Shown here: positions 2,496 through 4,479 of the stretch, piece by piece
Layout of the letters: each line of letters starts with the position of its first letter
Numbering within the stretch: position 1 is the first letter of the stretch
From: Macrostomum lignano
Taxonomy: Eukaryota
Length of the DNA stretch: 64,000 nt
Assembly (NCBI GenBank): GCA_002269645.1
Contig: NIVC01000068.1
Coordinates: forward strand, 558,001-622,000
Direction: 5' to 3'
Notes under the pieces: generated by a model
Told to the model about the DNA's origin: nothing
Databases searched by the model: none
What the model saw: only the letters and a program-made list of their open reading frames with translations
Translations under genes and position numbers: made by a program

Positions 2496-4410
2496 TTAGG
2501 CTACCGAGAAAGTCATCTCCAGCAGTCCATCGATGCCAGCTCGGATGACGTCACCAGACCTGACCGGGCCAACCCCAGCTGGTGTACCTGTCAGCAGAAT
2601 ATCGCCCGGCTCCATCGATATTGCCGATCGAGCAACAAAAGCCAACAGACGGGGCACAGGGAACAGCATCTGTTTGAGCTGGCCAGACTGCCTGTCCTGG
2701 TCGTTGACGCGAAGCCACAGGCGGGTGTCCGGGCCGATGGCGTCCGGCTTGATTGGCGGGTCCAAGGCGCTGATTGGACAAGAGGTGTCGAAGCACTTAG
2801 CCAGGGTCCAGGGCAGGCCGCCGGATTTCAAGCGATCCTGCACAGTTTTGTAGGGACCCAGGTGAAAATGGTACCCAGGCCGAGAAGCGTCCCAGAGTCG
2901 TTTTAAAGTTACAAAGGTAAAATTGGAAAGAAGTGACTCTAGACAACTCTTAAAAAGACGAGATGCCAAAAAGTCGTCAAAGGGTTGCTAAGAGTCAATT
3001 TGTGGCCTTTTGTTATCTGCGACTCTGTAATGACTCTGGGGCGCTTCTATAATGACTCTTTGAGTCACTAGTGAGTTGTCTGCCATGACTCTTACCGTGA
3101 TTTTTGATGTTTGTCACGGTAACGCTTAATTAATGGGGACTTTCTGTTTGCATTGTATGTAGTTCGCTTGTACTTCAAGACGCCTGTCCATGTCTGTCCA
3201 ATAGAGTCCATCTGTTCTGTGTTAGTGTCTGTCTGTCTGTCTGTCTGTCTGTGTCTGTCTGTCTGTCTGTCTGTCTGTCTGTCTGTCTGTCTGTCTGTCT
3301 GTCTGTATATCTGTCTGTCTGTCTGTATATCTGTCTGTCTGTCTGTCTTAGTGTCTGTCTTAGTGTCTGTCTGTCTGTCTGTCTGTCTGTCTGTCTGTCT
3401 GTCTGTCTTGTCTGTCTGTCTGTCTGTCTGTCTGTCTGTCTGTCTGTCTGTCTGTCTGTCTGTCTGTCTGTCTGTCTGTCTGTATATCTGTCTGTCTGTC
3501 TGTCTGTCTGTCTGTGTCTGTCTGTCTGTCTGTCTGTCTGTCTGTCTGTATATCTGTCTGTCTGTCTGTCTGTCTGTCTGTCTGTCTGTCTGTCTGTCTG
3601 TCTGTCTGTCTGTCTGTCTGTCTGTCTGTATATCTGTCTGTCTGTCTGTCTGTCTGTCTGTCTGTCTGTCTGTCTGTCTGTCTGTCTGTCTGTATATCTG
3701 TCTGTCTGTCTGTATATCTGTCTGTCTGTATATCTGTCTGTCTGTCTGTCTGTCTGTCTGTCTGTATATCTGTCTCTATCCAGCCCAGACTTCTCTTTGT
3801 CTATCTAGATATTCCTTAGTATCTGTCAGTTCATTTTTCAAAGTTTTTTATCATCGATATTAATTATATCAGGGGCCGGCAAACTCCGGTCCTCGAAGCC
3901 TCTCTATCCGGACTGCTTAAGGTTGTGTCTCTTTTCAGTTCCCTTCTCTTCTTTCTCTCACATCTCCTCTCCACTCTGACCCGCAGTCATGCGCCAGACT
4001 CTATATCCGACCCTTAAATAAAAATATATTAAAAAAAGATTGTAAATCCTAAAATCCCCAATGCACGCAAAACATTATCCAGCTGTTCCCAAGCATACTC
4101 TCACCTGCATCTTCCTGTCCGTCATATCCAATGCCAAGGTGTACCCAGCCACCGCCGCCATCGCCTCCTCGTCGGTGACTGCAGTTCCAGACAGCCGCTT
4201 GCCGATAACCACAGCCAGTTCGACCTCGTGATGAATCTCGTCAGCGTTTGGCGGCAGCCGAATCGGGCCGCTGCCCTCCAGCAGCAGCGAGGAGGCGGGC
4301 TTCATGAAAATCACCGGCTCCGTTGGCACCCGGTTGCCCAGCTCGGCCGCGTGCTCGGCGTAGTTTCGGCCGACCGCAATAATTTTGCGGCAGGATCTGA
4401 CTATGCTGGC
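2496..4410 (-). CDS. FAHD1: Fumarylacetoacetate hydrolase domain-containing protein 1; exons 4410-4105 and 2837-2496; initiator Met not found in the genomic exon
   Basis: Motifs KIIAVGRNYAEH, EPVIFMKP, HHEVELAVVIG, GYTLALDMT, GLPWTLAKCFDTSCP, GDILLTGTPAGVG; phase-0 GT-AG intron 4104-2838; 215 aa plus Met. Confidence 0.92.
2880..3115. repeat. Dispersed GACTC/GAGTC-rich repeat, copy 1 (FAHD1 intron)
   Basis: Shares AGGTAAAAT(T/A)GGAAAGAAGTGACTCTAGAC and further blocks with 7210-7625. Confidence 0.75.
3225..3772. repeat. (TCTG)n microsatellite with TATA interruptions
   Basis: Directly visible; generates the SVCL-repeat ORFs. Confidence 0.97.
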
Positions 4411-4479
4411 CTGTAGATAAGCAGGGAAACGGGGATTTTGGAGGCTTGGTAGTAAAGTGTACGTTAAGGATAAGGTCTG

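Follow-up and report, generated by a model that had tools for sequence, protein, structure and literature searches.

The FAHD1 gene of Macrostomum lignano probably takes its start codon from the spliced leader

Introduction

How can a conserved metabolic enzyme be made from a gene that carries no usable start codon? This question is raised by a FAHD1 gene of the flatworm Macrostomum lignano, located in the 64,000-nt stretch of genomic DNA analysed here (hereafter, the window). The species possesses a single spliced leader (SL) of 35 nt, CGGTCTCTTACTGCGAAGACTCAATTTATTGCATG, which ends in ATG (PMC8629364), and ~30-39% of its genes are trans-spliced (PMC8629364, PMC5730564). The first-pass annotation had proposed that FAHD1 translation depends on trans-splicing, on the premise that flatworm leaders end in AUG; the published leader bears out this premise for M. 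lignano, and the concern that the organism might lack an AUG-ending SL falls away. The use of the SL AUG as an initiator has been established in Schistosoma mansoni, according to later papers that cite the original work (Cheng et al., 2006, via PMC9851317 and PMC12582326), and in work on Macrostomum genomes the final ATG start codon is considered a likely part of the SL (PMC10468722). We found no paper singling out FAHD1 or quantifying SL-AUG dependence in M. lignano, nor any publication on the gene identifier Mlig024435.

Gene anatomy

The gene lies on the minus strand of the window and comprises the following elements:

4482-4480, minus strand: in-frame TGA that closes the frame upstream of FAHD1 exon 1, with no ATG between
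4434-4411, minus strand: pyrimidine tract and 3' splice acceptor CCCCGTTTCCCTGCTTATCTACAG (AG at 4412-4411), the proposed SL trans-splice acceptor
4410-4105, minus strand: FAHD1 exon 1, 306 nt, phase 0, encoding ASIVRSCRK...DRKMQ
4305-4303, minus strand: first genomic in-frame ATG, Met37 in a numbering that starts with the SL Met, 3' of the codons for His21 and Glu24
4104-2838, minus strand: FAHD1 intron, GTGAGA...TGCAG, containing a long (GACA)n microsatellite
2837-2496, minus strand: FAHD1 exon 2, 342 nt, with its TAA stop at 2498-2496

Exon 1 opens at 4410 with GCC AGC ATA GTC AGA TCC TGC CGC AAA ATT ATT GCG GTC GGC CGA AAC TAC, and translation from this GCC gives ASIVRSCRKIIAVGRNY. Its 3' end at 4105 reads ATGCAG/GTGAGA, and exon 2 starts at 2837 after ...CTGTGCAG. 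The two exons (306 and 342 nt) join in frame to encode 215 aa, with exon 1 accounting for FAHD1 residues 2-103 if the SL Met is counted as residue 1. Upstream of 4410, the reading frame runs through 23 sense codons, none of them ATG, and then meets the TGA 24 codons upstream; on the downstream side, no in-frame ATG is met before the one at codon 36 of the genomic ORF, embedded in VIFMKP and past the GRNY motif. The three observations at the origin of the proposal, namely a pyrimidine tract and acceptor placed before GCC AGC ATA at 4410 in phase 0, an upstream frame that reaches a stop with no ATG, and a first internal ATG located beyond GRNY, are therefore all as described in the first-pass annotation.

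Roughly half of the FAHD1 intron is occupied by the (GACA)n/(GTCT)n microsatellite and its interspersed ATAT units (window ~3225-3780), and the intron measures 1267 nt in the window vs ~594 nt in a paralogous locus on contig NIVC01002321.1 (hereafter, L002). A tandem array also lies 3' of the gene (window ~400-1330), whose minus-strand units, as read off the letters, are CCTGTCCTATAGTG and CCTGTCCTACATTT.

Identity and N-terminus of the protein

By sequence, the gene is the M. lignano orthologue of FAHD1, a mitochondrial-type oxaloacetate tautomerase/decarboxylase of the FAA_hydrolase fold; the human enzyme is also an acylpyruvase. With an initiator Met added, its product covers model positions 1-213 of the 214 of Pfam FAA_hydrolase (PF01557; E 3.7e-57, 193.9 bits for a curated cut-off of 23.9), and it aligns with the human FAHD1 structures 6FOG and 1SAW with residues 9-215 matched (E 1.6e-58). 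The top database match is a 99%-identical M. lignano protein, while the best matches outside Macrostomum are the FAHD1 proteins of coral, echinoderms, hemichordates, a brachiopod and trematodes, with ~46-59% identity. In the alignment with 6FOG, human His30, Glu33, Glu71, Glu73, Asp102, and Lys123 correspond to His21, Glu24, Glu63, Glu65, Asp96, and Lys117, the first four of which are invariant in the alignment of orthologues. We take these human residues, from the structural literature, to be the catalytic His and Glu, the two metal-binding Glu, and the Asp and Lys, so that the flatworm protein is like human FAHD1 at each of these positions. It is unlike it at the N-terminus, where the human protein has a genomic ATG and ~9 extra residues, and the enzyme activity of the flatworm protein is a prediction.

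Ahead of Met37 lie His21 and Glu24, both invariant, as well as the first strand (KIIAVGRNY), and a protein started at Met37 would consequently be devoid of the three. This bears on the possibility that the SL AUG is not used at all, and that ribosomes, on an mRNA that is not trans-spliced, start at Met37 or with a non-AUG codon, or else that this copy of the gene is non-functional. An in-frame near-cognate ACG is indeed present upstream, and since M. lignano, as a hidden polyploid, carries most of its genes in several copies (PMC8629364, PMC10468722), any one FAHD1 copy could be dispensable. However, the ORF is intact over both exons, the Pfam domain is fully covered, and the structure is kept in all known copies. 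We consequently hold it to be highly improbable that the gene does without the SL AUG, and we rejected the reading as a pseudogene in view of the intact ORF, the complete domain, and an exon 1 that is identical between copies.

In orthologues, the Met falls either in the column that precedes the M. lignano GCC or at most 7 alignment columns upstream. In Lingula, FAHD1 starts with MARFVEAGKK, and its Met occupies the same column as the proposed SL Met. Similarly, the Logan contig L004 (DRR639838), which is genomic, reads ...tctct ATG GCC TGC GTG CGC TTC TCT TGC CGC AAA, i.e. MACVRFSCRK, with an ATG that directly precedes the codon homologous to the M. lignano GCC at 4410. Trematode FAHD1 proteins start with MSKNLKDICRK or similar, and are one residue longer ahead of the shared CRK motif; despite this difference of a single residue, MAFFT puts their Met alone 7 columns upstream.

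The same Logan contig contains the closest relative of exon 1 outside M. lignano (L004:301-843, 60% identity). It has no intron at the M. lignano position, and the same N-terminus is made there from a genomic start codon.

Splice acceptor and spliced leader

The top motif at trans-splice acceptors of M. lignano is [T/C]TNCAG (PMC8629364). The FAHD1 acceptor, CTACAG, matches this motif and stands only 6 codons ahead of recognisable homology (SCRK). The leader's 3' end, i.e. its last 10 nt, is ...TTATTGCATG. With an SL that terminates in ATG and an acceptor in phase 0, the SL AUG would be joined in frame to GCC (...TTGC ATG GCC AGC...), an arrangement whose prior is by itself 1 in 3.

Six AGs occur from the upstream stop to the conserved block, and two of them are in phase 0: the one at 4412-4411, and that of TGACAG, which would define an exon start at 4476. 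If the SL were accepted mainly at TGACAG, the N-terminus of the protein would be extended by 22 residues to M-TLSLTYTLLPSLQNPRFPAYLQ-ASIV..., and the added part might serve in targeting. This AG comes directly after the in-frame TGA, and the SL AUG would be in frame there too, but TGACAG falls outside the [T/C]TNCAG motif. Moreover, the segment 4411-4476 diverges between the window and L002 at a noncoding-like rate, with 5 single-base changes over ~60 nt (excluding a block of 5 bases discussed below) vs 0 over the 306 nt of exon 1, and both the GenBank annotation and the SL tail found in L002 point to 4410. It is therefore very doubtful that 4476 is the main site, and we retain 4410 as the probable start of the trans-spliced exon.

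Within the 64-kb window, no match to the 35-nt SL was found at up to 3 mismatches, and thus no SL RNA gene. SL tails of 7-8 nt do occur elsewhere in the window, at chance level, none of them at the start of a gene or followed by a long ORF.

Gene models in GenBank and UniProt

The window product is identical to GenBank entry PAA91958.1 (BOX15_Mlig024435g3, 'partial', 215 aa), whose locus on NIVC01000068.1 shows 0 mismatches to the window over 14,410 nt; the window thus belongs to assembly Mlig_3_7. The CDS of this entry and that of the second copy (PAA58904.1) are both 5'-partial, and their first base is the one that follows the AG. For the Mlig_3_7 annotation, TBONE was used to cut transcripts where trimmed SL reads formed peaks, and ORFs were then called with TransDecoder (PMC5730564). 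As the 23 codons upstream of 4410 are open, any longer transcript would have extended the ORF, which indicates that the model starts at the acceptor, as expected for a cut made at SL reads.

Three UniProt models of M. lignano (A0A1I8H8P3, A0A1I8IQL0, and A0A1I8GFR5) likewise lack a Met, and begin with YLQ. This tripeptide is encoded by TAT CTA CAG, which is how the acceptor reads in the window; the models represent three sequence variants, and A0A1I8H8P3 corresponds to YLQ followed by the L002 variant of the product (P0121). They presumably derive from the earlier ML2 assembly. Their start, 9 nt upstream of the acceptor, falls exactly at the point where genome and SL tail share the letters TTAT, which suggests that the models come from transcripts carrying the SL, whose alignment ran a few bases into the outron.

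An exact look-up of M. lignano products starting with M followed by ASIV... (three alleles) in the protein collection gave none, and no M. lignano sequence was retrieved from the same collection with a query made of the SL-encoded prefix and exon 1. This indicates that the collection lacks such transcripts, rather than that these do not exist.

An SL tail in the paralogous locus

In gene order, L002 agrees with the window (APP-like, PPP1R21, FAHD1), and its exon 1 is identical at 306 of 306 positions. The five bases that precede it are TGCAT, vs CTACA in the window: L002 reads TTATTGCATG/GCCAGC where the window reads TTATCTACAG/GCCAGC, a block of 5 adjacent changes, whereas the remaining ~60 nt upstream present scattered single substitutions only. 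The L002 junction, ...CCCTGCTTATTGCATG/GCCAGC, is an exact match to the last 10 nt of the SL and contains no AG:

L002:9991-10000 (NIVC01002321.1 ~66,371-66,380): SL tail of the paralogous copy, at the place homologous to window 4420-4411

The Mlig_3_7 assembly was polished with Pilon by using Illumina DNA reads and also RNA-seq reads mapped by STAR (PMC5730564). Polishing with RNA-seq, where short SL overhangs would push these positions towards the leader, leads us to read the block in L002 as most likely an imprint of reads spanning the SL-FAHD1 junction. Alternatively, the SL tail may be real DNA, one FAHD1 copy having captured a leader-derived ATG in the genome, for example through conversion of a short tract with a trans-spliced cDNA as template. 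We regard such a capture as unlikely; if true, it would be a case of an SL-dependent gene acquiring its own start codon, and a snapshot of the interconversion between SL-supplied and genomic start codons. Even as genuine DNA, the tail would still derive from a trans-spliced mRNA joined at the base equivalent to 4410. The presence of SL bases in the assembly could be a systematic artefact at trans-splice sites, and the L002 case warns that RNA-seq polishing can insert leader bases and thereby destroy real acceptor sites. This SL tail is the most unusual item of the analysis.

Search for an upstream exon

Two further features, both on the same strand, are relevant to an origin of the start codon upstream of 4410:

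4411-6604, minus strand: candidate outron/intergenic region, 2194 nt from the stop of the upstream gene to the acceptor, with no credible ATG exon
10855-6605, minus strand: PPP1R21/KLRAQ-like gene, 732 aa, with its own genomic ATG and ending in TGA

The first-pass annotation had named a cis-spliced upstream exon as the finding that would overturn its proposal. Such an exon, located between 4411 and the PPP1R21 stop at 6605 or beyond, would supply the ATG, and 4412-4411 would then be an ordinary intron acceptor. The acceptor sequence alone does not tell cis- from trans-splicing, and parasitic flatworms use common acceptors for both modes (PMC12582326). Moreover, our scan of the 2194 nt retrieved 21 ATG-initiated, stop-free stretches that reach some GT in phase 0. 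However, none of the 21 ends at a GT[A/G]AG donor: most are ATGTAC.../GTACAC matches inside satellite units, and the others are AT-rich stretches of 1-24 codons with weak donors. No exon combining an ATG, a stop-free frame, phase 0, and a GT[A/G]AG donor thus exists in 4411-6604, and we rejected an upstream cis exon for want of a consensus donor in the region scanned. About one third of M. lignano donors do lack GT[A/G]AG (PMC8629364), which leaves room for a non-consensus or multi-exon 5' end; against this, neither the evidence-based GenBank models nor those of UniProt include an upstream exon, the N-termini of orthologues require no additional residues, and the SL tail in L002 marks the exact junction at 4410. 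Altogether, we judge the cis-spliced exon to be quite improbable.

Proposed mechanism

What is observed is the anatomy of the gene, its reading frame and homology, the boundary of the annotated CDS, and the SL tail present in L002; these lead us to conclude, with a probability of roughly 0.85, that M. lignano FAHD1 lacks its own start codon and receives its initiator Met from the SL AUG. The proposed dependence of FAHD1 translation on trans-splicing is therefore supported, in particular by the ATG end of the leader, the annotation boundary, the L002 SL tail, and the Met columns of orthologues.

The first coding exon of FAHD1 would be a trans-splice acceptor exon. The pre-mRNA may either be driven by a promoter located in the 2.2 kb upstream or be part of a polycistron with PPP1R21. 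The 35-nt SL would be joined at the AG at 4412-4411, with removal of the outron, and the junction at window 4410 would then read SL...TTGCATG/GCCAGCATAGTC, giving a mature mRNA ...UUAUUGCAUG/GCCAGCAUA... in which the last three bases of the leader serve as initiator codon for a 216-aa protein, MASIVRSCRKIIAVGRNY... From an mRNA that is not trans-spliced, no in-frame AUG would preserve the catalytic His21 and Glu24. We infer that SL reads map at 4410 and that ribosomes start at the SL AUG.

Relation to known systems

FAHD1 is a well-supported new example of a known flatworm mechanism, and not a new kind of system. As it is described in the papers that cite it, the SL-AUG system of S. mansoni is similar in its AUG-ending SL, in an acceptor that lies in frame with a conserved ORF devoid of a usable genomic AUG, and in a Met supplied post-transcriptionally. 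The present case differs in the organism (a free-living macrostomorph), in the leader (35 nt), and in the gene (FAHD1); moreover, translation from the SL AUG was demonstrated in S. mansoni, whereas in M. lignano the junction is deduced from the annotation and from an assembly imprint. FAHD1 can also be compared to the slORFs of nematodes, Oikopleura, and trypanosomes identified with slORFfinder (PMC9851317), where the leader likewise supplies the start codon and the stop codon and frame are common with the main ORF. These mostly involve NUG codons in the SL and are alternatives to the annotated ORF, whereas in FAHD1 the SL AUG appears to be the sole route to the full enzyme.

If our reading is correct, a conserved metabolic enzyme would be synthesised only by way of trans-splicing, a point of relevance to the debated role of the SL at monocistronic genes. 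It also has practical consequences. Both GenBank copies and the UniProt models are Met-less, being either 'partial' or starting with YLQ, and for phase-0 trans-spliced genes of flatworms the correct product would be the one with the SL Met added, of which FAHD1 may serve as a clean worked example. In M. lignano transgenesis, a genomic FAHD1 fragment would have to retain the acceptor, or be given an ATG, in order to be expressed.

The upstream gene and the spacer

PPP1R21 could be an operon partner of FAHD1, or simply its neighbour. The spacer that separates the two genes contains two satellite arrays detected by TRF (4483-5036 and 5921-6375), which are made of the same 32-40-bp unit (ATGTACAC... 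/ GGCCAGGGAGTGTACATTGGGGGTAGGG...) and flank an AT-rich unique segment of ~880 nt. Between the window and L002, the spacer is colinear and ~92% identical. SL-resolved operons of M. lignano were defined by a 1-kb threshold on the repeat-adjusted spacer, with RepeatMasker repeats also subtracted (Ustyantsev and Berezikov, 2021; PMC8629364). The present locus is like them in having PPP1R21 upstream on the same strand, a trans-splice-type acceptor downstream, and a spacer inflated by repeats. It is unlike them in that the spacer amounts to ~1185 nt (2194 - 554 - 455), just above the threshold, vs <1 kb, a value obtained by subtracting the tandem arrays detected by TRF. Whether the gene is part of an operon or monocistronic has no bearing on the start-codon argument. 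Finally, the two loci are distinguished by a single CAG in the N-terminal poly-Gln tract of the PPP1R21-like protein (MSQQQQQQK at window 10855 vs MSQQQQQK at L002:4227).
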